A DNA stretch of 64,000 bases from Octopus sinensis (GCF_006345805.1 NC_043014.1:37324001-37388000), one strand, 5' to 3'; positions 34,571 through 63,571 are shown, counted from the stretch's first letter. The notes: generated by a model not told the origin, from the letters alone. Program-made: numbers and translations.

Positions 34571-34597
34571 GGGTGATGGTGGTGGCATTCAACGTAC
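34571..34597 (-). pseudogene. Dead micro-exon A1
   Basis: Same flanks as the live cassettes, but acceptor AG>AT, donor GT>AT, and GTA CGT TGA stop in phase 0. Confidence 0.7.
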
Positions 34598-36120
34598 ATA
34601 TGGAGAAAAAGAGATGAGATACATGTGTATAGTGCATATACAGATAAATATATTCTCATACATAGAGACATGTGCACATATGAGTGTGTTTGTACATTCA
34701 TATGTATAGGCCACATGTATATCAGCCAGTATCTTATTTCATCAACAAAGATTAAAATATACGTGTTTATTAGTATCAGCCAGTATCTTTTCTCTTTGTA
34801 TAATGTTTAAAAAGAAATATGCTGATGAAAATATACGTGTGTATTAATATGGCATTAATAATTAATTAGAATAATAATTTCTACATTTATGAATTTGTGT
34901 TGCAAGATTCCTTGTGTGAAACTGTGTTGAAAGATATTGCTGCATATGGTGATGGTCATATTTTTTTGCTTTTTGCCAAATAGATATGTGCACTATATAT
35001 TCGTTCTTCCCCCATTTATTACTGTTCTTACTCTAACTCATGTCCATCATCCAGACACCTTTTGTCACACATCTGTGACCTCTTCAGTGACACTTTCCGT
35101 ATTCGTGTTTGCTCTTGCTCTGCTTATTCCATTCTATTCTTCTATGATGTGTCACATCATAAAAAAAAACAGAATGGAATGAGCAGAAGAAGAGCACACA
35201 CAAATGTAGAAAGTGTGGCTGAAGAGGTCAGAGATGTGTGACAAAAGGTATCCAGACAATGGACTTAAGTTAGAATAAGAAGAGTAATAAACAAGTGAAG
35301 ATCAGATATGTAGTGCATGTGTCTATTTGGCCAAAAAAGGAAAATAATGAACATCCCAAATGACAACAATATAATCATAATAATTAAACATTATGAATTC
35401 TTCTTGTAAGCTTGTTTCACTATGTGGCCTGCATACATTATCCATATCTTATTTATTATTGTACTTAAATTCATCATACTTTTATCTAAGAGTCTACCAC
35501 AAAAAGCAATGAATGAGAAGAAAAATCATATCTTTAGCAGCCATTTATGGAAAATCTGTCTGTGATAGGCGGAAACTAAAAATATATTTGAAATCAGCAT
35601 AAAAAATAGTTCTGAATCACTGAATAACCTATAAACAAACAATCAGCACTTATTTCATTTAAAAGTGCAGTTGTGTAATTATAGATATATAAAAATAATC
35701 ATGTGTGTGTATGTGTGTGCATGTGTGTGTGTAGATATATATATACATTTCTGTGTGTATGTGTTTGTGTATCTGTATGTGTGTGTGTGTTTGCATCTGT
35801 GTGTGTGTGTGAAAAAATCATCCAATGTTCTGTCATGAGGACCACAGACTTGAAGTGTTTCAAATTACAAGACACCATGTGAGAGAAAATCGCGATGTCA
35901 TTGGAGCATAATGTGTCCACATGGATGATGGCTCATTTGCAATCAATATTGCTGCAAAGAGAGAGAAAGTCAAACTGTTCAACCCATGACAGCAAGGAAT
36001 GTGGACATTAAACAACGACGATGCCGATGATGACTATGTTAATGTTTTAAATATGTTTTCTAAGCCAAAACAATGTAGTTATAAATATTAATAATATAGG
36101 TTGATGATTAGTTCCCTTAC

Positions 36121-36144
36121 CTGTCTTGCAGCAGTATGGCTCAT
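36121..36144 (-). CDS. Micro-exon B1 (24 nt, MSHTAARQ)
   Basis: ctcatctctttttctccatag|ATGAGCCATACTGCTGCAAGACAG|gtaagg. Open in phase 0; expression not shown. Confidence 0.7.
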
Positions 36145-38383
36145 CTATGGAGAAAAAGAGATGAGACATATATAGTATATATAGTGTATCATTCAACTAC
36201 AGCAGTAGCTGAATAATATTCTTAAGGACGCAATTTACACACACGCAGCACCTTTCAGAGCTTGTCACTAATTCAGTTCTTAACTAAATGGAAAACCAGT
36301 AGATGAAAATTGGTCCAGTAGAAAAATGTTTACAATAAAATTTGGACTGACATTATAGGAGACTAAATAACACCACCAGTCAAGTTTAGATCTAAATAAA
36401 GCAAAATATATTCATCTTAGCTTCAATGACAGAAGAAAGCATGAAGAATTTCATAGTTTTGTACCCATGCAACAAAAATTTGTATAAAAAAAGTTGGGAG
36501 GTAAAATATGAAAATTAATATAAGTAAGGCATAAAATTGAATTTAAGCATAAATAACTTTTTTGTTTTAAAAACAAGCTATATTTTAATCAACCAATAAT
36601 GCCAAAATTTTACTAGAGAATGAAATTGCCTGAAAATTCACAGATACTATTATTTTGACCTAAATAATAACTGAAAAAAAATTTCATTGAAATCTGTTTG
36701 ATACCGATTGCATACACATTAATAACACCTTCCATACTGTGATACTGATCATACAGAAATCACAATTTGTATCAAGTATTTGTTTCACACCCTTTAAATT
36801 AAGTGCCAGTTGAAATGGACAATCAGTATGAATGGGTAAAGCTGAATTCCTATTTTCAACTTCCTAATTATTAATAAATAATTAAAAAGATATTTTAATT
36901 CTTTACTTTTAAAAGAAGTAACAATTAATAACAAATAAATGTAATAAAGTGTAATAAAATTTTTAGTTTTAATAAATACTAATATTTTCTAAATCTAAAT
37001 ACTTCATTTGAACTTCTATCCTTAGCTGCAATATTTTAAGTAAAATCTTCTTGTTCTGTACTTTACCAGATGTAATAACTAGTCCTGAACTTTTCCAAGT
37101 GTAATAATAGGTCCTGTAATTTTCCAGGTTTATAAGCTTAAGAATATTATTTCTATTCCTCATATTTTTCCATGTAATATATATAGATAGTTAGGTTGAG
37201 ATATACATATATATACACACATGCATCCATACAAGCATGTAGATATACATATGTGTGTGTGTGTGTGTGTGTGTATGTATAGTCCACATGTGTACCAGCT
37301 CGTCAGTCAGTCTCACTGAACAGTGTTTATACAATAAACATGCTGAGTAAAATGTACATGTTAAGAATAATTATTGTAATAATAATAACTAGCAGATCCC
37401 TTAAACATTTGACAGAATCAACAGTCGATTTCATGGCTTATTTGTGAAAACTTTACCCTAAAACTCTAAAAGCGTAGCCTGGGTTGTGTTTGTATGAAAA
37501 GATGGTAAACATTCATTTTAGAAATATATTCTTTATTCTTATTATTTAAGCATTACTCCCTCATTTCCTTACTGACATGAAATTTCGTAACATTTTACTT
37601 CACGACTCTTTTTCTACTTATTTTTGGTCAATGCAACTAGCGATTCTTAATTCCTCGTGCATTTTTCTATCATTTAAGACTAAGAAAAGTATACTTTTAA
37701 TTTAAAATTTAAAAATTTATGTTAATTGAAGATGAATATCTGCCTACTGCTCATCACCCACCTTGAGGTCACATTATATTTTAATGTAACTTTTTTCTAC
37801 TGAACAAAGTCTCAAACTATTTATGCCAAACTATAGCTGAGGAGGTGACCTCTTTAAAACTATTAACAGTTTGCAATTTAGTTGAGAACTGAATTAGTAG
37901 TGAAGCTTGGAAGCTGCTGTGTTTGATGAAATGGTGGACTTGAGAATATATTCAGCCAGTACCGTGGTTGAATGATATTAGAACTTCTTAGAAGCTCAAT
38001 CAAATTGCTGGCCTACATACATTATTCACATCATTTCTTATTATTGATCTCGTCTTTTGTTCTTAATTTCATCATACTTTTACTTAGAAGTCTGCCACAA
38101 AGGCAACAAAATAACCTGTAAAATCATATCTTTATCAAACATATATGAAATATCTGTATGTAATAGGCAAATGTTAAAACCATTATTGAAATCAGTATGA
38201 AAAATAGTTCAGAATCACCTATAAGTAGACATTCATACTTTATTTCATTTAAAATTGCAAACTTGTGTAATCATAGATATTTATAAATAACTGTGTTTGT
38301 GTGTGTAAATGTTTTAAATATTTTTTCTAAGTGAAAACAATGCAATTTATGAATATTAATAACACAGGTTGATGGTTACTTAT

Positions 38384-38410
38384 GGGTGATGGTGGTGGCA
38401 TTCAACATAC
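38384..38410 (-). pseudogene. Dead micro-exon A2
   Basis: Duplicate of A1: AG>AT, GT>AT, GTA TGT TGA stop. Confidence 0.7.
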
Positions 38411-39816
38411 ATATGGAGAAAAAGAGATGAGATACATGTATATAGTGCATATATAGATAAATATATTCTCATACATAGAGACATGTGCACATATGTGTTT
38501 GTACATCCATATGTATAGGCCACATGTATATCAGCCAGTATTTCATCAACAAAGATTTAAATATATGTGTGTATTAATATGGCATCAATAATTAATTAGA
38601 ATAATAATTCTATATTTATAAATTTGTGTTGCAAGATTCCCCATGTTATACTATTATTTGAAACATATTGCTGCATATGGTGATGGTCATATTTTTTTGT
38701 TTGCCAAATAGATACGTGCACTATATATTCGTTCTTCCCCCATTTATTACTGTTCTTACTCTAACTCATGTCCATCATCCAGATACCTTTTGTCAAACAT
38801 CTGTGACCTCTTCAGTGACACTTTCCGTATTCGTGTTTGCTCTTGCTCTGCTTATTCCATTCTGTTCTTCTATGATGTGTCACATCATAAAAAAAAACAA
38901 TGGAATGAGCAGAAGAAGAGCACACACGAATGCAGAAAGTGTTGCTGAAGAGGTCAGAGATGTGTGACAAAAGGTATCCAGACAATGGGCTTAAGTTAGA
39001 ATAAGAAGAGTAATAAACAAGTGAAGATCAGATATGTAGTGCATGTGTCTATTTGGCCAAAAAAGGAAAATAATGAACATCCCAAATGACAACAATATAA
39101 TCATAATAATTAAACATTATGAATTCTTCTTGTAAGCTTGTTTCACTATGTGGCCTGCATACATTATCCATATCTTATTTATTATTGTACTTAAATTCAT
39201 CATACTTTTATCTAAGAGTCTACCACAAAAAGCAAAGAATGAGAAGAAAAATCATATCTTTAGCAGCCATTTATGGAAAATCTGTCTGTGACAGGCGGAA
39301 ACTAAAAATACATTTGAAATCAGCATAAAAAATAGTTCTGAATCACTGAATAACCTATAAACAAACAATCAGCACTTATTTCATCTAAAAGTGCAGTTGT
39401 GTAATTATAGATATATAAAATTAATCATGTGTGTGAGTATGTGTGTGCATGTGTGTGTGTGTAGATATATATATACATTTGTGTGTGTATGTGTTTGTGT
39501 ATCTGTATGTGTGTGTGTGTGAAAAAATCATCCAATGTTCTGTCATGAGGACCACAGACATGAAGTGTTTCAAATTACAAGACACCATGTGAGAGAAAAT
39601 CGCAATGTCATTGGAGCATAATGTGTCCACATGGATGATGGCTCACTTGCATTCAATATTGCTGCAAAGAGAGAGAAAGTCAAACTGTTCAACCCATGAC
39701 AGCAAGGAATGTGGACGTTAAACAACGACGATGCCGATGATGATTATGTTAATGTTTTAAATATGTTTTCTAAGCCAAAACAATTAACAATATAGGTTGA
39801 TGATTAGTTCCCTTAC

Positions 39817-39840
39817 CTGTATTGGACTGCTTTCAAAGAA
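39817..39840 (-). CDS. Micro-exon B2 (24 nt, FFESSPIQ)
   Basis: ctcatctctttttctccatag|TTCTTTGAAAGCAGTCCAATACAG|gtaagg. Open in phase 0, stop in phase 1. Confidence 0.7.
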
Positions 39841-40929
39841 CTATGGAGAAAAAGAGATGAGACATATATAGTATATATAGTGTATCATTCAACTACAGCA
39901 TTAGTTGAATAATATTCTTAAGGACGCAATTTACACACATGCAGCACCTTTCAGAGCTTGTCACTAATTCAGTTCTTAACTAAATGGAAAACCAGTAGAT
40001 GAAAGTTGGTCCCGTAGAAAAATGTTTACAATAAGATTTGTTGTGACATTATAGGAGAGTATGTAACACCACCAGTCAAGTTTAGATCTAAATAAAGCAA
40101 AATATATTCATCTTAGCTTCAATGACAGAAGAAAGCCTGAAGAATTTCATAGTTTTGTGCCCATGCAACAAAAATTTGTATAAAAAAAGTTGGGAGGTAA
40201 AATATGAAAATTAATATAAGTAAGGCATAAAATTGGATTTAAGTATAAATAACTTTTTTGTTTTAAAAACAAGCTATATTTTAATCAACCCAAAAATGTC
40301 AAAATTTTTCTAGAGAATGAAATTGCCTGAAAATTCACAGATACTATTATTTTGACCTAAATATCAACTGAAAGAAATTTCATTGAAATCTGTTTAATAC
40401 CGATTGCATACACATTAATAACATCTTCCATACTGTGATACAGATCATACAGAAATCACAATTTGTATCAAGTATTTGCTTCACACCCTTTAAATTAAGT
40501 GTCAGTTGAAATGATTTTTTATAACCTATTTTCAACTTTCTAATTATTAATTAATAATTAAAAAAATATTTTAATTGAATTATTCTTTATTTTTAAAAGA
40601 AGTAACAAGCAATAACAAATAAATGTAATAACGTGTAATAAAATTTTTAGTTTTAATAAATGCTAATATTTTCTAAATCTAAATATTTCATTTGAACTTC
40701 TATCCTTAGCTGCAATATTTTAAGTAAAATCTTCTTGTTCTGCACTTTACCAGGTGTAATAACTAGTCCTGAACATGTCCAAGTGTGATAATAGGTCCTC
40801 TAATTTTCCAGGTTTATAAGCTTAAGAATATTATTTCTATTCCTCATATTTTTCCATGTAATATATATAGATAGTTAGGTTGAGATATACATATATATAC
40901 ACACATGCATCCATACAAGCATGTAGATA

Positions 40930-40982
<53 letters not shown>

Positions 40983-42101
40983 TGTATGTATAGGCCACAT
41001 GCTTACCAACTGGTCAGTCAGTCTCACTACACAGTGTTTATACAATAAACATGCTGAGTAAAATGTACATGTTAAGAATAATTATTGTAATAATAATAAC
41101 TAGCAGATCCCTTAAACGTTTGAAAGAATCAAAAGTCGACTTCATGGCTTATTTCTGAAAACTTTACCCTAAAACTCTAAAAGCGTAGCCTGGGTTGTGT
41201 TTGTGTGAAAAGATGGTAAACATTCATTTTAGAAATATATTCTTTATTCTCATTCTTGGAGCATTACTCCCTCATTTCCTTACTGACATGAAATTTCGTA
41301 ACATTTTACTTCACGACTCTTTTTCTACTTATTTTTGTTCAATGCAACTAGCGATTCTTAATTCCTCGTGCATTTTTCTATCATTTAAGACTAAGAAAAG
41401 TATACTTTTAATTTAAAATTTTAAAATTTATGTTAATTGAAGATGAATATCTGCCTACTGCTCATCACCCACCTTGAGGTCACATTATATTTTAATGTAA
41501 CTTTTTTCTACTGAACAAAGTCTCAAACTATTTATGCCAAACTATAGCTGAGGAGGTGTCCTCTTTAAAACTATTAACAGTTTGCAATTTAGTTGAGAAC
41601 TGAATTAGTAGTGAAGCTTGGAAGCTGCTGTGTTTGATGAAATGGTGGACTTGAGAATATATTCAGCCAGTACTGTGGTTGAATGATATTAGAACTTCTT
41701 GGAAGCTCACTAAAATTGCTGGCCTACATACATTATTCACATCATTTCTTATTATTGATCTCATCTTTTGTTCTTAATTTCATCATACTTTTACCTGGAA
41801 GTCTGCCACAAAAGGCAACAAAATAACCAGTAAAATCATATCTTTACCAAACATTTATGAAAAATCTGTATGTGATAGGCAAAGATTAAAACCATTATTG
41901 AAATCAGTATGATAAATGGTTCAGAATCACCTATAAGTAGACAATCATAATTTATTTCATTTAAAATTGCAGACTTGTGTAATAACAGATATTTATAAAT
42001 AATTGTGTTTGTATGTGTGTCTGTAAATGTTTTAAATATTTTTTCTTAGTGAAAACAATGCAATTTATAAATTTCAATAACACAGGTTGATGGTTACTTA
42101 C

Positions 42102-42143
42102 GTAAGGCATTGACTCCCTGCATCGAGTCTTTCTCATGCATAC
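42102..42143 (-). CDS. Micro-exon C1 (42 nt, VCMRKTRCRESMPY)
   Basis: cacttctttttctccatag|GTATGCATGAGAAAGACTCGATGCAGGGAGTCAATGCCTTAC|gtaagt. Confidence 0.7.
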
Positions 42144-43437: not shown

Positions 43438-43475
<38 letters not shown>

Positions 43476-43523
43476 TATATAACAAAGTTGAGTTGTGGGG
43501 TACCGCACGAGTGGAATTATATA

Positions 43524-45178: not shown

Positions 45179-45215
<37 letters not shown>

Positions 45216-46410: not shown

Positions 46411-49400
46411 CATCATCATCATTTAGTGTCCGTTTTCCATGCTAACATGGGTTGGACGGTTCAACTGGGGTCTGTGAAGCCAGAAGGCTGCATCAGGCCC
46501 AGTCTGATCTGGCAGTGTTTCTACGGCTGGATGCCCTTCCTAACGCCAACCACTCCGCGAGTGTAGTGGGTGCTTTTTACGTGCCACCCGCACAGGAGCC
46601 AAACGGAGCTGGCAAACGGCCATGAACGGATTGTGCATTTACGTGCCACCGGCACTGGGGCCGGACGAGGCTGGCAACGGACACAAACGGATGGTGCTTT
46701 AACGTGCCACCGGCACGGAGGCCAGTCGTGGCGGCACTGTCAACAACCACGAAAGGATGGTGCTTTTTACTTGCCACCGGCACGGGGGCAGGGCGACACT
46801 GGCAACGGCCACGAACAGATAGTGCTTTTTACGTGCCACCGGCACGGGGGCCAGACGAGGCTGGCAACGGCCACGAACGGATGGTGCTTTTTACGTGTCA
46901 CCAGCATGGAGGCCAGTCGGGGCGGCGCTGGCAACGGCCACGATCGGATGGTTCGCTTACTTGTCACCGGCACTGGTATCACAGCCGCAGTTTCCATTGA
47001 TGTTGATCGACTTCGATTTTGGTTCTGCTTTCTGATATCTTCACAAGTGGAGTTTTGTGTCCCAAGAAGGAAAGGTATGTATAAGTCGACTGGCTACATA
47101 CCAGGTAGAAGCCACAGGTTATGTCTCACTAGTCTTGCCGGGTCTTCTCACGCACAGCATATTTCCATAGGTCTCGGTCTCTAGTAATTTCCTTGGTGAG
47201 ACCTAAAGTGTGAAGGTCGTGCTTCACCACCTCGTCCCAGGTTTTCCTGGGTCTACCTCTTCCACAGGTTCCCTCAACTGCTAGGGTGTGGCACTTTTGC
47301 ACACAACTATCTTCAGCCATTCTCATCACGTGACCATACCAGCGCAAACTTCTCTCTTGCACACCACAACTGATGCTTCTTAGGTCCAACTTTTCTCTCA
47401 AGGTACTTACACTCTGTCGATTATGAACACTGACATTACACATCCATCGGAGCATACTGGCTTCATTTCTTGCGAGCTTACGCATATATATCCTCAGCAG
47501 TCACGGCCCATGTTTCACTCCCATGTAGCATGGCTGTACGTACACATGCATCATACAGTCTGCCTTTTACTCTGAGTGAGAGGCCTTTTGTCACCAGCAG
47601 GGGTAAGAGCTCTCTAAACTTTGCCCAGGCTATTCTTACTCTAGCAGTTACACTTTCAGCACACCCACCCCCGCTACTGACTTGGTCACCTAGGTAGCAG
47701 AAGCTATCAACTACTTCTAGTTTGTCTCCCTGGAACGTGGTAGAAGTTGGTCTCTGCACATTTCCAGTGTTTATTGCTCCTGAGCATCTACCACAGACAA
47801 AAACTATTTTCCTAGTTAGCCTTCCTTTGACATTGCTGCACCTCTTATGTGTCCATAGCTTACACTTGGTGCATCTTATAGAGTTTCTACTTACACCTTT
47901 TTTACAGATCGACCAGGGCCATCTACCTGAAGTCATTTGTGATTGGTCTACCTTCCTACTTATTAGGACTTTGGTTTTGGCTAGGTTGATTCTAAGGCCC
48001 TTCGATTCTAATCCTTGTTTCCACACCTGAAACTTCTCCTTCAGTTCTGATAGTGACTCAGCAATTAGAGCAAGGTAATCAGCATAGAGGAGCTCCCAGG
48101 GGCATCCTGTCTTGAATTCCTCCATTATTGCCTGGAGGACTATGATAAATAGGAGGGGACTGAGGACTGAACCTTGGTGGACCCCAACCTCTACCCGGAA
48201 TTCTTCACTGTACTCGTTGCCAACCCTCACCTTACTAGCAGCGTCTCTGTACATGGCTCGCACAACTCTCACTAACCATTCATCTATCCCCAGTTTCCTT
48301 ATTGACCACCAGATAAGGGATCGGGGGACCCCGTCGAAGGCTTTCTGCATGTCAACAAAAACCAGGTACAGGGGCTTATCTTTGGCTAGGTATTTCTCCT
48401 GCAGCTGTCTTACCAGGAATATAGCATCAGTAGTACTTTTCCCTGGCACGAACCCAAACTGCATCTGATCTAAGCTAACTCTCTCTCTAATTAGGTGGGC
48501 TATGACCCTCTCCGTAACCTTCATTACCTGATCCAGCAGCTTGATACCCCTGTGGTTATTTGTATCTAGGGCGTCACCTTTACCTTTGTAGCAGTTGACT
48601 ATTATGCTGCTACACCAGTCATTGGGTATGACTCCTTCGTGTATCACCTGGTTAACTATACGGGTAACTAGGCTATAGCCGACACTACCAGATATTTTGA
48701 GCATCTCTGCAGTAATTCCTGATGGGCCTGGGGCTTTCCCTGTTTTCATGCTTGTAATTGCCTTAACTACTAAGGAACAGTCAACTCGGATTGCTGGTCC
48801 CTCTGTTGGGTCGACATTAGGCCGACTCTCTTTATCCCATTCATTTTCCTCATTCAGCAACCTTTCATAGTGGCGTCTCCAAACCTCTCTCTTTGTATCC
48901 TCATTTAGCGCAAGTGAACCGTCATCCTTGCGAACACATTTCTCTACTACCATGTCACGATTCTCCCTCACACACTGTCTTGCAACACGAAATACCTCAA
49001 GTCTTTCATCCTCACGGCGCAGCACCTTGGCAAATTTTTTCTTATCTGCTTCCCCTCTGGCTAAATACACCTGCCTCCTAGCTTCCCTTCTGGCAGTCTG
49101 ATACACTTCCCTGCTACCACCATTCTTCCAGTCCTTCCAAGCCTGTTTCTTTTGTCTAATAGCCCTGTCAACAATATTGTTCCACCACCACGTTATTTTG
49201 GGTCTTGAGGGGACTTTGCACCAGCCACAGATCTGGTCAGTAGCTTTCAGCAGGTTGTCCCTCAGAAGCGTCCAGTTGTATTCTACCCCATGTGTAGCTA
49301 TACCTCCCTCTATTTCGTCAAAGGCTTCAAGTAACATGTCTCTAAATCTCTGTCCATTCGCAGGGTCTTTAAGCTTCCAGACCCTTCTTCTCCATGTTGG

Positions 49401-51135: not shown

Positions 51136-53466
51136 CTATGGAGAAAAAGAAGTGAGATATATATATGTATAGATATATATATATATATATATAGATATAT
51201 ATATTATATATATATATATATAAATATATGTATATATTTATATATATAAATATATATATAGAGAGCGAGAGTGAGATAAATATATACTCATACATAGAGA
51301 CATGCACACACATGTGTGTATTTGTGCATTCTTATGTATAGGCCACATGTATATCAGCCAGAATCTTTTCTCTTTGTATAATGTTTAAAAAGAAATATGC
51401 TGATGAAAATATACGTGTGTATTAATATGGCATTAATAATTAATTAGAATAATAATTTCTACATTTATGAATTTGTGTTACAAGATTCCTTGTGTGAAAC
51501 CGTGTGTTGAAAGATATTGCTGTATATGGGGATGGTCATATTTTTTTGATTTTTGCCAAATAGATACGTGCACTATATATTCGTTCTTCACACATTTATT
51601 ACTGTTCTTACTCTAACTCAAGTCCATCATCCAGAAACCTTTTGTCACACATCCGTGACCTCTTCAGCAGCACTTACTGTATTTGTGTATGCTCTGCTTA
51701 TTCCATTCTAACACCTCTTCAGTGACACTTGCCGTATTCGTGTGTGCTCTTGCTCTGCTTATTCCATTCTGTTCTTCTATCGTGGGTCACATATGATGGG
51801 TCACATCATAGAAGAACAGAATGGAATAAGCAGAACAAGAGCACACACAAATAAGGAAAGTGTTGCTGAAGAGGTTAGCTACAGATGTATGACGAAAGGT
51901 TTCTGGACGTTGGATGTTGGTTAAAATAGCAAGAGTAATAAACAAGTGAAGAGCAAATATATAGTGCATGTGTCTATTTGGCATGAAAATGAAAAAAGAT
52001 GACCATCCCAAAATACAACAATACAATAATAATAATTGAATACTATGACTTGTTCTTGTAAGCTCACTTAACTGTGTAGCCTACATACATTATCCACATC
52101 TTTTTTATTATTGTTCTTAAATTCATCATACTTTTACCTAAAGGTCTGCCACAGAAGGCAATGAATGACAAGAAAAATCATCATATCTTTAGCAGCCATT
52201 TATGGAGAATCTGCCTGTGATAGGTGAAAACTAAAGACATACTTGAAATTAGCATAAAAAATAGTTCTGAATCACGGAATCACATATACGCAAACAATCA
52301 GCACTTATTTGATTTAGAAGTACAGACTTGTATAATCGTAGATATATATATATATAAATAATTGTGTGTGTGTGTGTGTGCATGCATGTCTGTGTGTGTG
52401 TGTGTGCAAGTGTTTTTATGTATATATATGTGTGTGTGTGTATATTTAAGTGTGTATGTGTGTGTGTGTGTATGTATATATATATATATATAGATAGATA
52501 TAGATATATATGAAAAAATACTGTTAAGCATTTCGCCTGGCACGCTATCGTTTCTACCAGCTCACTGCCTTAGACAGTAAACATTCATTTTAGAAATATA
52601 TTCTTTATTCTTATTGCTTAAGCATTACTCCCTTACTTCCTTACTGACATGAAATTTCGTAACATTTTACTTCATAACTCTTTTTCTACTCATTTTTGTT
52701 CAATGCAACTAGCGATTCTCAATTCCTCGTGCATTTTTCTATCATTTAAGACTAACAAAAGTATACTTTAAATATAAAATTTTAAAATTTATGTTAATTG
52801 AAGATGAATATCTGCCTACTTCTCCCCACCCAATTTGAGGTCACATTATATTTTAATGTAACTTTTTTTCTACTGAACCAACTCTCAAACTATTTATGCC
52901 AAACTATAGCTGAGGAGGTGTCCTCTTTAAAACTATTAACAGTTTGCAATTTAGTTGAGAACTGAATTAGTGGTGAAGCTTGGAAGCTGCTGTGTTTGAT
53001 GAAATGGTGGACTTGAGAATATATTCAGCCAGTACTGTGGTTGAATGATATTAGAACTTCTTGGAAGCTCAATCAAATTGCTGGCCTACATACGTTATTC
53101 ACATCATTTCTTATTATTGATCTCGTCTTTTGTTCTTAATTTCATTATACGTTTACCTAGAAGTCTGCCACAAAAGGCAACAAAATAACCAGTAAAATCA
53201 TATCTTTACCAAACATTTATGAAAAATCTGTATGTGATAGGCAAAGATTAAAACCATTATTGAAATCAGTATGAAAAATGGTTCAGAATCATCTATAAGT
53301 AGACAATCATAATTTATTTCATTTAAAATTGCAAACTTGTGTAATCATAGATATTTATAAATAACTGTGTTTGTGTGTGTGTGTGTGTAAATGTTTTAAA
53401 TATTTTTTTCTAAGTGAAAACAATGCAATTAATAAATATTAATAACACAGGTTGATGGTTACTTAC

Positions 53467-53502: not shown

Positions 53503-53542
53503 CTATGGAGAAAAGGAAGTGAGATATATATATATAGATATA

Positions 53543-55860
53543 CTAGCATTAAGGACCCGTCATTGCCGAGTATAGTGCTAGTGCATGTGTATATGTGTAT
53601 ATATATGTGTACATATAACATGTACATCTATATATATACATCTACACATAAAATACAAAATACAAAGTTATATCTTGATATTGCTAGTGATAACAATACT
53701 CAAAATATATAACTGACTGGAATTGTTAGCCCGTCTCTTCTAATTTCGATCAATTGTATCTTGTCCTCCCTCTTGTATAGAAGTGTGGCTACAATCCAGC
53801 CTACCTCTACTTTGGGGTGGGGAGATGGGCATTAAAAATTTTTAGGGATGTCCTACGTCCCAGATATAAAGGTAAAAATAAAATATTTCCACTTTGCAAG
53901 TTCGAGTCGAGTACTCCCTTGCACGCTCCGTTGACTCGAACCTTCCTTCTATTGTGGCGAATTTACCGCCTCTGATTAGATAGCTTTCATAGTCACACCA
54001 CGACACTTTTCGAAGGTGCTTTCCTCCATGTGTTTTATTATTACCCACTAGGGGTGAACATAGAGGGGACAACACAACCTGGCTGAGGTGCTTCCTGCGG
54101 TTTGGGTTGGGGTTGGGGTTGGCATTCCGCCCTTACATGACCCTTCTTACCGCAGCCGAAGCACCTCGGCTTTCTGCCCTCTACGAAAACTGTTACTCTA
54201 TCTTCTTCACTTATTTTTAGAGTTTCTGGAATCTCCTCCAGTGTTTGAATTTCTGCCTGAATGGCTATTACTATCCGCTGCCCTTTCCAGAATTCCTCCT
54301 CCTCTACTGTGGCCTGGAGGATGTTTATTTTTTCCCCCAGGCCTACCATGACTGCTGCCACCAGACATTCGGCATCTGCCTCTGGCGGAATGTTATTCAT
54401 CGTGATTTTTGATGTTCTTTTTCCTCTATACAAGGGGAGGAGAACAATGTTCTCCGCTTTTATTGGCTCCATAGACAGTTTTTTAGCTATCTCCTCTGTT
54501 GTGAAACGCACCTCTACTGTGCCGTATCTCTTTCCTCTGTTGATGTATGTGATCTTGTCCATTAATGGTTTTAAACAATTCTCGATTTTTTTTTCCTCAA
54601 TTTTTTGTATCATTTTGCTTGTCGTATTAAAGGTCTTATAGATTATTCTTCTTTTTTCGATTTCTTCATGTTTTTGGGCGTTTGTGACCACTGTCACTTC
54701 CGTGCCCTCTTTTGTAATACAGTCCGCATATTTCTTTAAGTCTTTGACGTTTATTTTTTTGATTTTCTTACCAGCTACTTCTGAGAATTTTTTCGCTGGT
54801 GCTGGTGCTGGTGCAGGGGTTTCCTTTTCCTTTGGCGCCACCGCCTCTTTTTTCTTTGGTGACACCGCCTCTTTTTTCTTTGGCGACACCACCGGAGATT
54901 CTTCTTCACTAGTCACGGGAGAATATGAGATGGGGGATTCTATCTCGAACAACTGGCTTAACAAGCCCTTGGCACAACCAAGATAAGTGATATTTTTTTT
55001 CCCCCACGGAGGGGGAACACCACCACGAAGTCCTCGCGCGAAGGCTGACTTCAACAGTTGTACAGCAATAAACAAAGACAGGTAGACACACAGTAGAATA
55101 TAACGGAGAAAATATACACTAAGGAAAATTGTAATAACTCACTACACACGCGATTTGCGTTCCGCCATGTGCTCAAATCTTATTTTTCTCTACATCGTAT
55201 ACTTTATAGACAATAGTCTTTTCTTTAATTTAATTTTTTATTATCCATCTGGACAATTCCATTTCTGCACGCTAATTTTATGTTTAATTTATTCCCATTT
55301 ATGTGAAACCACTTATTCAAGTTCAAATCATTGATGCAATTTTATACCAATTGCTATTTTTACTTTTGTTATGTTACAATTATATTATACTTTAGTTTGA
55401 TTTTAATTATTACTTACTACATATAATTCAATTGTTATTATTATTTTTATTGTTAAAGTGAAAGTATCTGACATAAAATAGAGAAACGTTTTTGTTTCAC
55501 TTTTAACACGTAATACTGAAATAGTGGAGAAGATATGATATTGCTATGGGCTCGCTCTTGGCAAGAAGTTGAACATTTTTTTGCCCATGAAAATACATGG
55601 ACCCTAAGTAAGGCATGTATAAAATTTGAATGGAATTGGTTGTGTAGTTCTCAAGTTTCAGGAAATCGTAGTGGGGAAGATATGATATTGCTGTGGGCTC
55701 GCCCTAGGCTAAAAGTTAAAAGTTATTTTTGCCGATGACACTCTCCGGACCCTAAGTAAGGCATGAGTAAAGTTTGAATGAAATTGGTTGTGTAGTTCTC
55801 AAGTTTTAGGGAAACACAGAGACAGACAGACACACTTTCTCAGTTTTATATATATAAAGA
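53543..55860 (-). mobile_element. Non-autonomous Helitron interrupted by a Tx1-like insertion
   Basis: Same termini and body as 11144-12179; split at CCATGTG. Confidence 0.85.
54033..55164 (-). mobile_element. ORF1-only (HAL1-like) Tx1-type retroelement with a 7-bp TSD
   Basis: TSD CCATGTG at 54026-54032 and 55165-55171. Open frame 54041-55075 has RRIIYK..RGKRYGTVEVRF..VTVFVEGRKPRCFGCGKKGHVRAEC (CCHC) and reads straight into the 3' tail. The frame starts at TTG, with no early ATG. Confidence 0.85.
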
Positions 55861-57794
55861 GATATATATATAGTGCATATATAGACAAATATATACTCAT
55901 ACATAGAGACATGCAGACACATGTGTGTATTTGTGCATTCTTATGTATAGGCCACACGTATATCAGCCAGAATCTTTTCTCTTTGTATAATGTTTAAAAA
56001 GAAATATGCTGATGAAAATATACGTGTGTATTAATATGGCATTAATAATTAATTAGAATAATAATTTCTACATTTATGAATTTGTGTTGCAAGATTCCTT
56101 GTGTGAAACCGTGTGTTGAAAGATATTGCTGTATATGGGGATGGTCATACTTTTTTGTTTTTTTGCCAAATAGATACGTGCACTATATATTCGTTCTTCA
56201 CCCATTTATTACTGTTCTTACTCTAACTCATGTCCATCGTCCAGAAACCTTTTGTCACACATCTGTGACCTCTTCAGCAACACTTACTGTATTTGTGTGT
56301 GCTCTGCTTATTCCATTCTAAAACCTCTTCAGTGACACTTTCCGTATTCATGTGTGCTCTTGCTCTGCTTATTCCATTCTGTTCTTCTATGGTGGGTCAC
56401 ATATGATGTGTCACATCATAGAAGAACAGAATGGAATAAGCAGAACAAGAGCACACACAAATAAGGAAAGTGTTGCTGAAGAGGTTAGTTACAGATGTAT
56501 GACGAAAGGTTTCTGGACGTTGGATGTTAGTTAAAATAGCAAGAGTAATAAACAAGTGAAGAGCAAATATATAGTGCACGTGTTTATTTGGCATGAAAAT
56601 GAAAAAAAGATGACCAAATACAACAATACCATAATAATAATTGATTATTATTAAAATACAGATGAAATACCGCTTCTAAAATACAAAATTTTATCAAAAG
56701 CATTAAGAATAAACCCTGTTTATGTGACATATTCTACCAGTATCGGAAGTTTGAAAGTGTTTAGTTGAAAAAAATTAATTAAATAATCTGTATATCAAAG
56801 TCAACCTCGCTGAAATTTGAACTAAAAAACGTAAAGACAGATGAAATACCGTTAAGCATTTCGCCTGGCACGCCATCGTTTCTACCAGCTCACTGCCTTA
56901 GAAAGTAAACATTCATTTTAGAAATATATTATTTATTCTTATTGCTTAAGCATTACTCCCTTACTTCCTTACTGACATGAAATTTCGTAACATTTTACTT
57001 CATAACTCTTTTTCTACTCATTTTTGTTCAATGCAACTAGCGATTCTCAATTCTTCGTGCATTTTTCTATCATTTAAGACTAAGAAAAGTATACTTTTAA
57101 TTTTAAATTCTAAAATTCATGTTAATTGAGGATGAATATCTGCCTACTGCTCCCCACTCACCTTGAGGTCACATTATAATTTAATGTAACTTTTTTTCTA
57201 CTGAACCAACTCTCAAACTATTTATGCCAAACTATAGCTGAGGAGATGACCTCTTTAAAACTATTAACAGTTTGCAATTTAGTTGAGAACTGAATTAGTG
57301 GTGAAGCTTGGAAGCTGCTGTCTTTGATGAAATGGTGGACTTGAGAATATATTCAGCCAGTACCGTGGTTGAATGATATTAGAACTTCTTGGAAGCTCAA
57401 TCAAATTGCTGGCCTACATACGTTATTCACATCATTTCTTATTATTGATCTCGTCTTTTGTTCTTAATTTCATTATACGTTTACCTAGAAGTCTGCCACA
57501 AAAGGCAACAAAATAACCAGTAAAATCATATTTTAACCAAACATTTATGAAAAATCTGTATGTGATAGGCAAAGATTAAAACCATTATTGAAATCAGTAT
57601 GAAAAATGGTTCAGAATCACCTATAAGTAGACAATCATAATTTATTTCATTTAAAATTGCAAACTTGTGTAATCATAGATATTTATAAATAACTGTGTTT
57701 GTGTGTGTGTGTGTGTAAATGTTTTAAATATTTTTTTCTAAGTGAAAACAATGCAATTAATAAATATTAATAACACAGGTTGATGGTTACTTAC

Positions 57795-57830
57795 ATGGTG
57801 TATTACTTGTTCATCATATCCTCGGAATTC
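57795..57830 (-). CDS. Micro-exon C4 (36 nt, EFRGYDEQVIHH)
   Basis: cacttccttttctccatag|GAATTCCGAGGATATGATGAACAAGTAATACACCAT|gtaagt. Confidence 0.75.
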
Positions 57831-57872
57831 CTATGGAGAAAAGGAAGTGAGATATATATATATATAGATATA

Positions 57873-58373
57873 CTAGCATTAAGGACCCGTCGTTGCCGAG
57901 TATAGTGCTAGTGCATGTGTATATATATGTGTACATATAACATGTACATCTATATATATACATCTACGCATAAAATACAAAATACAAAGTTATATCTTGA
58001 TATTGCTAGTGATAACAATACTCAAAATATATAACAGACTGGAATTGTTAGCCCGTCTTTTCTAATTTCGATCAATTGTATCTTGTCCTCCCTCTTGTAT
58101 AGAAGTGTGGCTACAATCCAGCCTACCTCTACTTGGGGGGGGGGGGGGGGCATTAAAAATTTTTTTTTAGGGATGTCCTACATCCCAGATATAAAGGTAA
58201 AAATAAAATATTTCCACTTTGCAAGTTCGAGTCGAGTACTCCCTTGCACGCTCCGTTGACTCGAATCTTCCTTCTATTGTGGCGAATTTACCACCTCTGA
58301 TTAGATACCTTTTAATAGTCACACCACGACACTTTTTGAAGGTGCTTTCCTCCATGTGTTCAAATCTGATTTC
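57873..58373 (-). mobile_element. Helitron 3' half (duplicate of 53543-54032)
   Basis: Same position next to the micro-exon acceptor as the 53543 copy; ends at a second Tx1-like insertion. Confidence 0.85.
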
Positions 58374-60015
58374 TTTATTACCCACTAGGGGCTACATAGA
58401 GGGGACGTTACAAACATTGGAGACATAGAACATCACAATTACATATATATGAGCAAAATGGAATATGAAAATGATATATGAAAGCGATGCCGACGGCCCC
58501 ATCCGCCAGCATCACTTACCTGTCCTTCTTCACCCATTTCCAATTAGCATTCCTTGTTTACCTATCACAATGTTCGTTTTTCTTTTAGCCCTCTCTATCA
58601 ATTTTGCACTGACTTCCAACACACACCCTCTTCCTCCAACCTTCTCATCAATATACCCGTATCATCACTATCCACAGCCATGTAGCTACAATCTTCATGT
58701 TCGTACCAATTGGTTAACACCCTTTTTTTTACGTTTTGTGTGTCTTTCCCATTTATAACACATAAAAAGTGGGTCTTGGGACTTTCTTTGTTCTGTGTGT
58801 CTGTTTTTGTTTTTCTCGTAGGCGGGGAGTGGGTGGAATCGCTGTTTGCAGGGGAAGGATGGGACTCCAAGGGTGTGGGTGGTGTTGGGGTGGGTTGGGG
58901 CTTCGCACTGTCTTTCTTTTTCTCTCTTTTTCTCTTCTTTCTCCCTTCTTCCCACTCTTGCTGCATCTCCTCTTCTTCTGTCGTTTCCTTTTCTGTTTGG
59001 TTCTCTTTAGTTTCTTCCACTTTTGGGGCTTCCGCAATGATTTCCTTTTCTTTTTCCTTTGGTGGGGGAGGGCAGTAGGCTCTTATGTGACCCCTCAGGC
59101 CACACTTGTAGCACCTGGGCGCCCTACCCTCCACCCACACTCTCATAATAATATTCCCAGTTTTTATACTGTCCGTAAGTTTTCCTATTACTTCCGCCTC
59201 CGTCTGAATGTTCATTTCTAGTGTGGCACCTCTCACGCCTTCATATTTCATAATGGCGTGGAGGATGTCCACTTTATCTTCGTTTCCTTTGATTATTGCA
59301 GCCATTATATATTCGCCCTCTAGGTGTGGAGGTATTCCTTCCACCCTAATTCTGGTAGTCCTTCTATTTAAGTACGAGGGGAACAAGTAAACTTTTTCTG
59401 TCCTCACCACCTTGGCTGCTATATTTCTGGCAACTTTCTCGCTTCTAAATTGTACCATTATAGTTCCATATTCTAGTCCTTTTGTCATGTACACGATTTC
59501 TTCTCCTGTCTGTTTGAGAGCCTCTTCAATTGCTTCCATATTAATCACTTTCATTTTTCTACCTCCATTCATATATACTTTATATTTAATGGTTCTACGA
59601 CTGAACCAGTCTCCGCACCCTGCTGGAGGCAACAGCTCGACCTCTCCGTTCTCCTCCTCCCTCATGAACTCCTGGAAGCCCGTCAACCTAGCCAGGTCTA
59701 TCTCTTTTTCCGTTGACCTCTTCGTCACTCCTGCGTAGGTGCTTTCCATCTTTTCCACCGCTTCCTCCTCAGATGTCGATGAAATTTCAGAGAGATTTCT
59801 CCCTTCCATCTCATCCGTTTGGTAGAGGCGGCTCAAAGTCGCCTCAGACCGAAAAACGGCCGCCCGAACCGAAACAGTGCGACACACAGAACCAGTGCGA
59901 CGCGAAACCGCACCAACCGACATTCCAATTCCGCAACAACCACAATTCACTTTTTGTTCTTTTTTCTTTTTTAACCGAATTTTACAGAGCGTAAAAAAAC
60001 ACGACCGACTTCAAA
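58374..60015 (-). mobile_element. Second ORF1-only Tx1-type retroelement
   Basis: Intact ORF1, about 200-nt 3' region with no ORF2, and the shared tail GTCCCCTCTATGTAGCCCCTAGTGGGTAATAAA. Confidence 0.85.
58598..59809 (-). CDS. Tx1-type ORF1 (gag-like nucleic-acid chaperone with CCHC knuckle)
   Basis: ATG at 59809 (MEGRNLSEISS), STYAGVTK, RTTRIRVEGIPP, VWVEGRAPRCYKCGLRGHIRAYC and a Glu/Lys-rich C-terminus; no stops. Confidence 0.85.
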   Translation of the reverse strand: MEGRNLSEISSTSEEEAVEKMESTYAGVTKRSTEKEIDLARLTGFQEFMREEENGEVELLPPAGCGDWFSRRTIKYKVYMNGGRKMKVINMEAIEEALKQTGEEIVYMTKGLEYGTIMVQFRSEKVARNIAAKVVRTEKVYLFPSYLNRRTTRIRVEGIPPHLEGEYIMAAIIKGNEDKVDILHAIMKYEGVRGATLEMNIQTEAEVIGKLTDSIKTGNIIMRVWVEGRAPRCYKCGLRGHIRAYCPPPPKEKEKEIIAEAPKVEETKENQTEKETTEEEEMQQEWEEGRKKRKREKKKDSAKPQPTPTPPTPLESHPSPANSDSTHSPPTRKTKTDTQNKESPKTHFLCVINGKDTQNVKKRVLTNWYEHEDCSYMAVDSDDTGILMRRLEEEGVCWKSVQN

Positions 60016-60023
60016 CCATGTTG

Positions 60024-61318
60024 TTTTATTATTACCCACAAGGGGCGAACATAGAGGGGACAATACAATCTGATGTGGGGTCAGATATACGAATGGGTTT
60101 ACAAAAAAGGCGAATTTAAAAATTTACAGAAATTACAAAAAATAGAAAAAAATCGAATGGGGAACAGACCGGAAGACATTACGGATGGAGTGGGAGCGGG
60201 TTTAGCTCGGACCCCACGAGCCCCGCCTGCCCACTGATACATTGGTTTCGTCTAGTTTTACATTTATGTGGTATCATCCACTCGCAACTTTCGTGCTACA
60301 TCTTTCCATCGTTCTTCATACACTCTCTTAGTCAGGCATTTTCTCTCCAGCCCTATCTTCCTTTTCAGGTGAAAGATGAAATAATTCATCAAACCAGGGC
60401 CGGAGATGAACTTGCCTGACCGTAAACCTTTCATTCTCGTCTTCCATATCACCTCTTTCGCAATTGCTACTACAACGAGAAAACAAATCTTACCTTCTTT
60501 CGCGAGGAAATCTGGTGGGTCAATTTTTGTAATCGATTCAGTCGACAGCTGTACTCTTCATGTGCTTGACAACAGCTGTTCGGCATAAACCCACACCTCA
60601 GACACGACCGAACAATAGCGTGCGGGACGGTTTCCCTATCCCGCTCGCATCTTGGACATATCGGACTGTCTTGGCCACCGTGCCTTGCGAGTTTATCCCG
60701 AACAGGTAGAGCTCCTCTGTAGCATTGCCATGCCAGAGACTTCTGGAAGTTGTCCAGTGTCTTCGGCTCGAACGTATGTCGGAACAGACTGGCCAGCTGA
60801 TTATCGTCGAGACCTAGGGTTTCCCCCAAGGTATCTTCACATTCCGCCTCTACCAACCCTCTATAGAAGAATGTGGTGAAACCCCACCGCAGGCGTTGCC
60901 GAGCGACGGAATAGCAGGAGAGCCTTGCGACACTCCGTGTACCATGTGCCTAGTTTCGATCTACGATTCAGCCAGGTTTCCCATCCACCGAAACTAGTGA
61001 ACTTGGGAAAACATCAGTTTTGCTAGCGAGACCACACCCGTTCACCATCCAGGTAGAGCCACAGATGTCTTAACCTCAGCGCATGTCTGCGCATCATCAG
61101 CCAAGGCATCCCTAGCCCACCCTTTAATGGTTGTTGACAGCAAGTAGAGCGTTTCACAAGTGGTTTCCCGCCCTTCCACAAGAAGTAAAAGAGCTGTCTT
61201 TCCAACTTGATCAACCACGAATCAGGGCAAGGAACGACGGAAAGGCGGTAGGTGATAACCGATGCGATAAACACATTGGCTACCTCCGCCCTCCCTTTCA
61301 GGGATAGCCACCGCCAAG
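60024..61318 (-). mobile_element. 3' fragment of Tx1-clade ORF2 (post-RT region + zf-RVT) with the same 3' tail
   Basis: WRWLSLKGRAEVANVFIAS..LFYFLWKG..GGLGMP and LAWQCYRGALPVRDKL..CPRCERDRETVPHAI. Tail GTCCCCTCTATGTTCGCCCCTTGTGGGTAATAATAAAA. Confidence 0.85.
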
Positions 61319-61367
61319 ACCAGGTGGCTTGTCGGTTTCCTGAAGTTATGTAATATGTATATATATA

Positions 61368-61964
61368 TCATCATCATCATTTAACGTCCGCTTTCCATGC
61401 TAGCATGGGTTGGACGGTTCAACTGGGGTCTGGGGAGCCCGAAAGCTGCACCAGTCCAGTCAGATCTGGCAGTGTTTCTACAGCTGGATGCCCTTCCTAA
61501 TGCCAACCACTCCGAGAGTGTAGTGGGTGATTTTATGTGCCACCGACACAGGTGCCAGACGAGGCTGGCAAACGGCCACGCTCGGATGGTGTTTTTTATG
61601 TGCCACCGACACAGGTGCCAGACGAGGCTGGCAGACGGCCACGCTCGGATGGTGTTTTTATGTGCCACTGACACAGGTGCCAGATGAGGCTGGCAAAACG
61701 GCCACGATCGGATGGTGCTTGTTACGTGCCCACAGCACAGAGGCCAGTCGATGCGGTACTGGCTACGGCCACGTTCGGATGGTTTTCTTGTGTGCCACAA
61801 GGATACAAATTCCATTGATGTTCATCTATTTTGATTTGTTTTGATTTTCACTTGCCTCAACAGGTCTTCACAAGTGTCACAAGAAGGAAGGTATGCACAG
61901 GTGGACTGACTACGTCCCAGGTAGGGGCCATGGGTTATGGCCTGACTAGTCTTGCCGGGTCTTC
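61368..61964 (-). mobile_element. RTE LINE 3' end (3' UTR + tail)
   Basis: Reverse complement of 10495-11131, including GAAGACCCGGCAAGACTAGT at the ORF2 stop. Confidence 0.9.
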
Positions 61965-62066
61965 GGATGGTGTTTTTATGTGCCACCGACACAGGTGCTA
62001 GATGAGGCTGGCGAAGGGCCACGATCGGATGGTGTTTGTCATGTGCCCACCGCACTGACTACAGCA

Positions 62067-62103
<37 letters not shown>

Positions 62104-63526
62104 TCGGCAGAAGTTAGAAAGTAAGTCGAAAGCTGAGATTGCATGTATTGGCACTTATCTAACACGAATTTGTCCATTGTCACTCTGTAACTTCTGACGA
62201 AATAACTTCTAAAATACAAGATTTTGTCAAAAACGTAAAGAGTAAACTATTCTATGTGACACATTCTACCAGAATCAGAAGTCTGAAAGTGTTTAGTTAA
62301 AAGAAATTAATTAAATAATGTGTATGTCTAATTGAATAGATCCAAATGGATGAAAGGCAAAGTCGACCTCTGCGGAATTTGAACTCAGAACGTAAATACA
62401 GATGAAATGCCGCTTCTATAATACAAAATTTTATCAAAAACATTAAGAATAAAACCCTGTTCTATGTGACATATTCTACCAGTATCGGAAGTTCGAAAGT
62501 GTTTAGTTGAAAAAAATTAATAAATAATCTGTACGTCAAAGTCGACCTCGCTGAAATTGAACTAAAAAATGTAAAGACAAATGAAATACCATTGAGCATT
62601 CGCCTGGCACGCTATCGTTTCTACCAGCTCACTGCCTTAGAAAGTAAACATCATTTAGAAATATATTCTTTATTCTTATTGCTTAAGCATTACTCCCTTC
62701 TTCCTTACTGACGTGAAATTTCGTAACATTTTACTTCATAACTCTTTTTCTACTCATTTTTGTTCAATTGCAACTAGCGATTCTCAATTCCTCGTGCATT
62801 TTTCTATCATTTAGACTAACAAAAGTATACTTTAAATATAAAATTTTAAAATTTATGTTAATTGAAGATGAATATCTGCCTACTTCTCCCCACCCAATTT
62901 GAGGTCACATTATATTTTAATGTAACTTTCTTTCTACTGAACCAACTCTCAACTATTTATGCCAAACTATAGCTGAGGAGGTCCCTCTTTAAAACTATTA
63001 ACAGTTTGCAATTTAGTTGAGAACTGAATTAGTGGTGAAGCTTGGAAGCTGCTGTGTTTGATGAAATGGTGGACTTGAGAAATATATTCAGCCAGTACTG
63101 TGGTTGAATGATATTAGAACTTCTTGGAAGCTCAATCAAATTGCTGGCCTACATATGTTATTCACATCATTTCTTATTATTGATCTCGTCTTTTGTTCTT
63201 AATTTCATTATACTTTTACCTGGAAGTCTGCCACAAAAGGCAACAAAAAACCAGTAAAATCATATCTTACCAAACATTATGAAAAAATCTGTATGTAATA
63301 GGCAAAGGTTTAAAACCATTATTGAAATCAGTATATGAAAAATGGTTCAGAATCACCTATAAGTAGACAATCATAATTTATTTCATTTAAAATTGCAGAC
63401 TTGTGTAATCATAGATATTTATAAATTACTGTGTGTGTGTGTGTGGTAAATGTTTTAAATATTTTTTTCTAAGTGAAAAACAATGCAATTAATAAATATT
63501 AATAACACAGGTTGATGGTTACTTAC

Positions 63527-63571
63527 CTGGAATATTCTTGCCTGAGTGTCATCAGTGTTTCTTATGCATAC
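63527..63571 (-). CDS. Micro-exon C5 (45 nt, VCIRNTDDTQARIFQ)
   Basis: cacttccttttctccatag|GTATGCATAAGAAACACTGATGACACTCAGGCAAGAATATTCCAG|gtaagt. Only phase 0 is open. Confidence 0.75.

Follow-up and report, generated by a model that had tools for sequence, protein, structure and literature searches.

The locus studied here lies in a 64,000-nt stretch of the Octopus sinensis genome (GCF_006345805.1 NC_043014.1:37324001-37388000), which we call the window; it is animal DNA rich in transposable elements, and positions are counted from its first nucleotide. Its minus strand carries an array of nine micro-exon cassettes and, downstream in the direction of transcription, an ankyrin-repeat exon whose orthologue in Octopus vulgaris belongs to an annotated gene. 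The question is whether this array may be a young cluster of alternative exons that varies one loop of an ankyrin-repeat protein. An earlier description made from the sequence alone (the original prediction) had seen in it a hypervariable, frame-preserving segment placed just N-terminal to the ankyrin surface of an ankyrin-RING ubiquitin ligase.

The cassette array

The motif TTCTCCATAG, with at most one mismatch, occurs 12 times in the window, against a mean of 4.5 in 100 shuffles, none of which reached 12. Ten of the matches are on the minus strand (spanning 34598-63581), and nine of these ten have extended common flanks; the remaining one, at 52209, shows no flank similarity to the cassettes and was rejected as a chance match. 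All nine cassettes follow the same plan on the minus strand, from 63571 to 34571: a branch point, a polypyrimidine tract, TTCTCCATAG, a body of 24-45 nt and GTAAG. Each body is preceded by a conserved 22-nt block (TCTCAC/TTCCTTTTCTCCATAG), which we read as a branch-point-like CTCAC or CTCAT, a pyrimidine tract and AG. After the variable body the nine copies share GTAAGTAACCATCAACCTGTGTTATTAATATTTAT.AATTGCATTGTTTTCACTTAGAAAA, the sequence of the 3' flank being AACCATCAACCTGTGTTATTAAT, and the 5' parts of the exons can still be aligned with one another (GTATGCATAAGAAAC / GTATACCCGAGAAAC / GCATATTCAAGAAAC). Tandem exon duplication is defined by adjacent homologous exons in one gene, and here the acceptor block, the donor and about 1 kb of flank are common to the nine copies. 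The whole array (34427-63594, minus strand) consists of nine cassette units, which are tandem segmental duplicates with insertions of transposable elements between them. As for a known or structured RNA, the window has no Rfam match, and the predicted fold of a cassette plus its flanks is no more stable than that of shuffled sequences (z = +0.24).

In transcript order, cassette 1 (type A; 63571-63527, 45 nt, VCIRNTDDTQARIFQ) has its AG and GTAAGT intact; cassette 2 (57830-57795, 36 nt, EFRGYDEQVIHH) has intact splice sites and is open in phase 0; cassette 3 (53502-53467, 36 nt, EFRGYDGQVMYD), copied from cassette 2, is the youngest duplicate. Cassette 4 (51135-51104, 32 nt) has intact splice sites, but a transcript that included it would change frame, which makes this cassette a probable pseudo-exon or poison exon. 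Cassette 5 (42143-42102, 42 nt, VCMRKTRCRESMPY) is followed by cassette 6 (type B; 39840-39817, 24 nt, FFESSPIQ), whose donor is GTAAGG, and by cassette 7 (type C; 38410-38384, 27 nt), which is dead, AG being changed to AT and GTAAGT to ATAAGT, with an in-frame TGA. Cassette 8 (type B'; 36144-36121, 24 nt, MSHTAARQ) is a duplicate of cassette 6 with a hyperdiverged body, and cassette 9 (type C'; 34597-34571, 27 nt) is a dead duplicate of cassette 7, with the same AT, ATAAGT and in-frame TGA. The nine minus-strand cassettes of the original prediction are therefore real, and every length and peptide that it gave was correct.

Both AG and GT are kept in seven of the nine cassettes, and six of these seven have a length that is a multiple of three (45, 36, 36, 42, 24 and 24 nt), the other being the 32-nt cassette 4. 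All seven are free of stops in phase 0, whereas most of them have stops in phases 1 and 2, as had been claimed, and phase 0 is fixed independently by the O. vulgaris orthologue. When the four novel independent cassettes are compared with shuffles, the probability that all are free of stops in phase 0 is P = 0.05. The independent length classes (45, 36, 32, 42, 24, 27, 27 and 48 nt) include seven multiples of three out of eight (P = 0.003); this test pools the cassettes of the window with the O. vulgaris copies and counts dead copies, and for the dead copies and those of O. vulgaris it takes the boundaries from our alignment. Since every intact cassette apart from cassette 4 is symmetric, the choice of any one of them, or of none, leaves the frame unbroken, and any subset can be joined in frame, as was originally proposed.

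The host gene and its Octopus vulgaris orthologue

The ankyrin-repeat exon of the window (23263-24095, minus strand, 833 nt) opens in phase 0 after the acceptor CTCTTTTCAG|ACC. It has one close relative in the protein database, the O. vulgaris protein P0002 (273 aa, 'ankyrin repeat RF_0381 isoform X1'), which is matched by Pfam Ank families. In the O. vulgaris genomic sequence (L001), the gene begins with a first coding segment of 16 nt at 10001 and continues with exons near 15537-15647, at 17207-17365 and at 25946-26104 (donor GAG|GTGAGT), a micro-exon at 31831-31875 (CCATAG|...|GTAAGT) and an ankyrin exon at 60321-60659 (acceptor TTTTCAG|CCC); this exon structure is that of the annotation. 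The acceptor at 24095 is orthologous to that of the O. vulgaris ankyrin exon, because the preceding intron is almost identical, and the part of the original prediction that placed the start of the ankyrin exon there, in phase 0, agrees with the gene model.

The order of segments in the protein is ...NLVKPLLEAARNSVE-VCIRNTDDTQAGIFQ-PPLKDGYDTNLLDLACDS..., and around the micro-exon it reads ...LLEAARNSVE|VCIRNTDDTQAGIFQ|PPLKDGYDTNLLDLAC..., the next exon beginning with PPLKDGYD; all the junctions flanking the micro-exon are in phase 0. Cassette 1 is identical to this micro-exon at 44 of 45 nt and 14 of 15 residues. The coding sequence of P0002 thus contains cassette A, with canonical junctions, and cassette 1 is therefore a bona fide annotated coding micro-exon.

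Three upstream coding exons of the gene, two of which encode ankyrin repeats, lie past position 64000 of the window. As a consequence, the cassette is internal, between ankyrin blocks, and the N-terminal position attributed to it in the original prediction was wrong. An AlphaFold2 model of P0002 has a mean pLDDT of 90.6 and a pTM of 0.85, and its only dip in confidence (mean pLDDT 57, residues 151-160) falls inside cassette A (residues 146-160), which in the model covers the end of a long helix (130-150) and then a coil reaching to the next ankyrin helix at residue 171. In this model the cassette is predicted to encode a disordered internal loop between ankyrin repeats. No other stretch of the predicted ankyrin solenoid has low confidence, and alternative cassettes would therefore change this inter-repeat loop, altering both its length and its chemistry.

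Duplication units and history of the array

The duplicated unit is about 2-2.4 kb long and is composed of an upstream segment of about 0.8-1.1 kb, a (TA)n tract, the 22-nt block and the exon, followed by about 1.2 kb of intron. Cassettes of type I have their motif at 63581, 57840, 53512, 51145, 42153, 38420 and 34607, and those of type II, with the donor GTAAGG, at 39850 and 36154. One unit searched against the window by blastn found all six remaining type-I positions, in alignments of 960-1573 nt with 91.6-95.3% identity; among the type-II cassettes, cassette 8 was matched at 76% over 156 nt and cassette 6 gave no cassette match. The 687 nt surrounding cassette 8 are 92% identical to the unit of cassette 6. 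Type A is present five times in the window and the B-C pair twice, and the spacing between cassettes, from acceptor to acceptor, is at least 1.4 kb.

In O. vulgaris only four copies are present, in the same order as in the window: a dead type-II copy (L001 28243-28269, plus strand, 27 nt, AG changed to GG, GT lost, frame open) located 3.6 kb upstream of A; A itself; B (L001 34575-34598, LFESSPIQ), identical to cassette 6 at 23 of 24 nt; and C (L001 35333-35380, 48 nt, AG kept, frame open), the positional counterpart of cassette 7. Three of them, namely A, B and C, keep AG and GT, although the GTAACC donor of C is weaker. The O. vulgaris segment L001 30706-35816 is collinear with positions 43444-37975 of the window, which include the cassettes at 42143, 39840 and 38410; it follows that the window has four extra type-A units upstream of this block and a second B-C pair downstream of it. 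The difference may reflect gain in the O. sinensis lineage or loss in O. vulgaris. Given the dead copy upstream of A in O. vulgaris, the array of the window may also extend past position 64000.

Flanks and gene order identify cassette 5 as the positional orthologue of O. vulgaris A, though one with a diverged exon body: the flank is 94% identical and free of gaps (Ov31821), while in the exon alignment 32 matches stand against 7 mismatches and 9 gap columns. O. vulgaris A is in fact a mosaic, its flanks being nearest to w42153 and its exon to w63581, which hints at exchange among units by gene conversion.

Divergence is confined to the exon bodies

Between paralogous units, the flanks (22 nt upstream and 250 nt downstream) are 88-100% identical, a range that leaves out the truncated unit at 34607, whose flanks give 70-74%, whereas identity falls to 45-65% in the exon bodies, which also differ by indels (P down to 3e-8 in Fisher tests of the mismatches). 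The hypervariability of the bodies that was originally claimed is thus borne out. Cassettes 1 and 2, for example, are 95% identical in their flanks and 57% identical in their exon bodies. In an alignment of about 950 columns comprising the five type-A units of the window and O. vulgaris A, the exon forms the deepest trough, with a mean pairwise identity of 0.42-0.56 against mostly 0.8-1.0 elsewhere; lesser dips in the same alignment go down to 0.63 and 0.74. The drop in identity begins right after AG and stops at GT, with conservation on both sides, in the 22 nt that precede AG and in the GTAAGT that follows the body.

The same pattern is seen in the youngest pair. Cassettes 2 and 3 differ at 4 positions within the 36-nt exon and at 1 within the 272 nt of immediate flank (Fisher P = 7e-4), and by our codon reading all four exon differences change an amino acid (E/G, I/M, H/Y and H/D). 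The duplicated B-C pair provides an internal control, cassette 9 (C') being the neutral reference for the comparison of B with B': the dead copies C and C' are identical at 26 of 27 nt, whereas the intact B and B' match in 14 of 27 alignment columns. Moreover, orthologous exons are conserved between the two species (44 of 45 nt for A, 23 of 24 for B), so that the divergence lies between paralogues and does not reflect a general mutation hotspot. Cassette 1 keeps the ancestral exon sequence, and in the other copies the exon bodies alone have diverged several-fold faster than the intron. Silent differences in the ankyrin exon put neutral divergence between the two species at about 10% (pS = 0.098), and measured against this the exon bodies have changed several-fold faster than neutral sequence.

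A local mutation hotspot beside the (TA)n tract was considered and rejected, in view of the conserved 22 nt between the tract and the exon and of the dead copies, which show no hyperdivergence. A 12-mer scan of the window and L001 (135 kb) found no template for the new exon bodies elsewhere in them; there is hence no evidence of patch conversion from within those 135 kb.

Interpretation and alternative explanations

The reading that we favour, to which we would give about an even chance, is that the array is a young, lineage-expanded tandem cluster of micro-exons in a long intron of an octopod ankyrin-repeat gene, where it would vary an inter-repeat loop. According to this proposal, a unit of about 2 kb, carrying a 45-nt phase 0-0 micro-exon with strong splice signals, would have been duplicated in tandem; some of the extra copies would be, or would recently have been, spliced as alternative versions of one protein segment, and their exon bodies would have been remodelled under selection on the peptide. 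Such selection implies present or past translation of the copies as alternative forms of the loop. Three copies would be decaying (two without splice sites, one frameshifted), as expected of an array undergoing birth and death. A bolder form of the same idea, which we find doubtful, is that octopods diversify the ankyrin inter-repeat loop through the choice of fast-evolving duplicated micro-exons, the repertoire growing and turning over from one close relative to another under diversifying selection; if true, splicing would here generate variable loops on an ankyrin scaffold, in loose resemblance to the randomised loops of designed ankyrin binders.

Work on transcript diversification in cephalopods has dealt mainly with RNA editing. 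Splicing of the extra copies, if it occurs, would mean that micro-exon choice varies the loop of a binding scaffold in a cephalopod and that the birth of an alternative-exon cluster has been caught very early, with nearly identical introns and already remodelled exon bodies, so that the order from duplication to divergence and then to regulation or decay could be observed directly. If they are unspliced, a hyperdivergence bounded by the exon still calls for a mechanism.

The alternative that survives best, and that we regard as possible though somewhat improbable, is that only cassette 1 is functional, the other eight copies being unused pseudo-exons, by-products of a segmental duplication within the intron. 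Their divergence would then reflect either selection for the disabling of redundant duplicates, which might otherwise be included together, or gene conversion of the flanks with older exon differences left in place. Several observations favour this explanation and count, at the same time or separately, against alternative use of the copies. The sole gene model, that of O. vulgaris, includes A and skips B and C; protein searches returned no product containing cassettes 2-8, only P0002 being related, and the peptides of the other copies are found in no database protein. Three of the nine copies are visibly defective, and one of these, cassette 4, shifts the frame in spite of its perfect splice sites; strong splice sites are therefore no guarantee of productive use, and constitutive inclusion of all copies is unlikely in a working gene. 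The mosaic of flanks and exon in O. vulgaris A suggests exchange among units. The gene is fast-evolving, with an overall pN/pS near 1, and the value of 1.12 in the ankyrin exon fits relaxed constraint equally well as positive selection on a binding surface. The statistic for stop-free phase 0 is only marginal (P = 0.05). Finally, the wider units of cassettes 2 and 3 are 95-97% identical, and if this divergence of 3-5% is taken as the baseline, the excess in their exons is only about 3-fold.

The pattern of divergence itself is harder to reconcile with unused copies. Neutral pseudo-exons cannot outpace the neutral intron around them, and the dead C and C' indeed do not (1 difference in 27 nt). 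Silencing takes a single change in a splice site and not about 50% divergence with indels that preserve the frame (P = 0.003), while conversion sparing exactly the 24-45 nt between AG and GT in several units would itself need selection on the body.

It is much less probable that the array is a combinatorial or mutually exclusive module of an ankyrin-RING ubiquitin ligase serving intracellular recognition or immunity, as was originally put forward. The symmetry of the intact cassettes, of which any subset is in frame, and the hyperdivergence of the exon bodies are compatible with such a module, and a RING exon (13776-13628, minus strand; zf-C3HC4_3, 31.9 bits against a Pfam cutoff of 27) does lie 10 kb downstream on the same strand. 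This exon joins in frame with a 167-nt exon (15156-14990, minus strand) and with a further ankyrin exon, ANK2 (18871-18662, minus strand; Ank_4, 42 bits in Pfam), which has a phase 0 acceptor at 18871. However, the ankyrin exon of the cassette gene ends in phase 2, and its direct splicing to 18871 gives a frameshift and an early stop. Its GTAAGT donor contains a TAA (23261-23259), and the O. vulgaris coding sequence ends at that donor TAA; the cassette gene may therefore end at 23259. The frame mismatch points either to a missing exon of length 3n+1 or to two transcription units. No tblastn match to the ANK2 or RING exons exists in L001, which reaches 10 kb past the O. vulgaris gene, and the ANK2-RING concatenate has no match in the protein database. 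A sequence search of the PDB with the C-terminal part gave generic ankyrin matches only, MIB1 among them, which do not discriminate. A MIB-like ligase would combine ankyrin repeats and a C-terminal C3HC4 RING in one polypeptide; the gene model of the orthologue has no RING, and a single ankyrin-RING gene is accordingly not established.

Nor do the data suggest that exclusive choice, by which each transcript would carry exactly one exon of the cluster, is enforced. A conserved 45-nt element downstream of the cassettes was scanned over the window and L001 for docking/selector pairing and gave nothing above shuffles; the best docking duplex in the window lies at 25100-25041 and has -29.9 kcal/mol, where shuffled queries gave -24.8 to -28.4, and its site is missing from L001. 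Besides this lack of RNA pairing, the introns are too long for steric hindrance, the splice sites are all GT-AG, with no sign of incompatible spliceosomes, and the intact cassettes are multiples of three, so that double inclusion stays in frame and would not be policed by nonsense-mediated decay. With only three cassettes keeping AG and GT in O. vulgaris, the repertoire would be small and unstable.

It is hardly credible that the array is made up of transposable-element copies, or forms an intronic cluster of small RNAs, with no more than a resemblance to exons flanked by splice sites: the window is rich in transposable elements, and some segments of the unit (such as its positions 1628-1955 and 2725-3218) have matches elsewhere in both orientations, but the cassette and its immediate flanks are confined to the array, in one orientation and in an order conserved in two species, copy 1 is coding in the orthologue, and there is no Rfam match and no stable fold.

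Comparison with known systems

In venom gene families, such as conotoxins and snake venom phospholipase A2, introns and flanks are more conserved than the coding part, which is read as a sign of diversifying selection. The octopus array is similar in that the introns of recent paralogues are more conserved than the coding segment. Venom families, however, consist of whole-gene duplicates encoding secreted toxins, whereas here single micro-exons are duplicated within one transcription unit, in what is apparently an intracellular repeat protein.

The neural micro-exons of bilaterians are 3-27 nt long, depend on SRRM4, occur singly and are deeply conserved in sequence; they alter surface loops of interaction domains. 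The octopus cassettes share with them the preserved frame and the conserved flanking intron, but in the octopus array conservation is lowest in the exon bodies. The sequence between the polypyrimidine tract and the AG of the cassettes shows no UGC motif on inspection.

Tandem exon duplication clusters with mutually exclusive or alternative exons are known from Dscam1 (exons 4, 6 and 9), Mhc, 14-3-3 zeta and sodium-channel exon 5a/5b (reviewed in PMC9013439), and unannotated duplicate exons are common (PMC9013439). The array resembles these clusters: its exons are homologous, lie head to tail in one intron, have a common phase and splice architecture, originated by local duplication and encode the same protein segment. 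It also differs from them. The octopus exons are micro-exons that vary in length from 24 to 45 nt; duplication was very recent, the flanks being still 88-100% identical, yet the exon bodies are already about 50% diverged; and no competing RNA structure was found, while the introns are too long for steric exclusion.

In the micro-exon genes (MEGs) of Schistosoma, variation is generated through exon choice (PMC10526429), and the octopus cassettes are like those of MEGs in being symmetric micro-exons of 3n nucleotides, hypervariable and separated by long introns. MEGs consist mostly of symmetric micro-exons, and the small secreted proteins that they encode are almost entirely composed of distinct micro-exons (PMC10526429), whereas the octopus array consists of paralogues of one micro-exon in a conventional ankyrin gene. 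The octopus gene is not a MEG, since the host ankyrin exons are conventional ones of 159-833 nt; P0002 starts with MGDVIGRDIDG, in which no signal peptide is evident by inspection. Our search found no paper on this locus or on micro-exon arrays of octopuses more generally, nor any linking octopus micro-exons or ankyrin repeats to tandem exon duplication.

Variation in the ankyrin exon

Over 93 codons of the ankyrin exon (window 24095-23817 compared with L001 60321-60599), there are 24 amino-acid-changing and 6 silent differences, giving the pN/pS of 1.12. Six of the first eight residues after the acceptor at 24095 differ between the species (TRKKVGNN in the window, PPLKDGYD in O. vulgaris), and the intron just upstream is almost identical; the segment directly following the cassette is therefore also hypervariable. 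A 198-nt tandem repeat (window 23327-23890, minus strand, 2.8 copies, 90% matches) adds pairs of ankyrin repeats, and the exon comprises 278 codons in the window against 113 in its O. vulgaris orthologue, which indicates that the number of ankyrin repeats of this gene is also shifting between close species.

Other elements in the window

Open reading frames (ORFs) of a non-LTR retrotransposon, with RVT_1 and a PHD-like finger, are located at 47478-49337 (minus strand), 9230-10507 (plus strand) and 5846-6205 (minus strand); a 619-aa copy of the retrotransposon ORF is uninterrupted and lies within the array, between cassettes 4 and 5. Two long ORFs of 450 and 344 aa (58598-59950 and 54041-55075, both on the minus strand) carry a CCHC zinc knuckle and have no Pfam match, with a related sequence at 11648-11131; their duplication accompanied that of the units of cassettes 2 and 3, and they probably represent nucleic-acid-binding proteins encoded by an element.

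Remnants of Tc1/mariner-type transposases are found in the two introns that flank the ankyrin exon, at 30510-31535 (plus strand) and 19395-20065 (minus strand). The plus-strand remnant matches HTH_Tnp_Tc3_2 and DDE_3; the minus-strand ORF (19760-20047) has no Pfam match and was called by eye. At 1343-3303 (plus strand), an asparagine-rich ORF of 548 aa is followed by one of 105 aa with a weak match to the GIY-YIG nuclease (21.7 bits, just below the cutoff), and this region may be a Penelope-like element; an ORF at 25642-25929 (plus strand) looks related by eye.

The first 1,500 nt of the window (1-1500) form a CA/TG-rich low-complexity tract, which gives rise to long artificial His/Thr or Cys/Val ORFs on both strands. 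A GC-rich unit of 62-66 nt (GGCACATAAAA..CCATCCGAGCGTGGCC..), probably a SINE-like or satellite family of this genome, forms short tandem arrays at 10763-10962, 46569-46973, 61531-61798 and 63793-64000; the arrays occur on both strands and give spurious ORFs.

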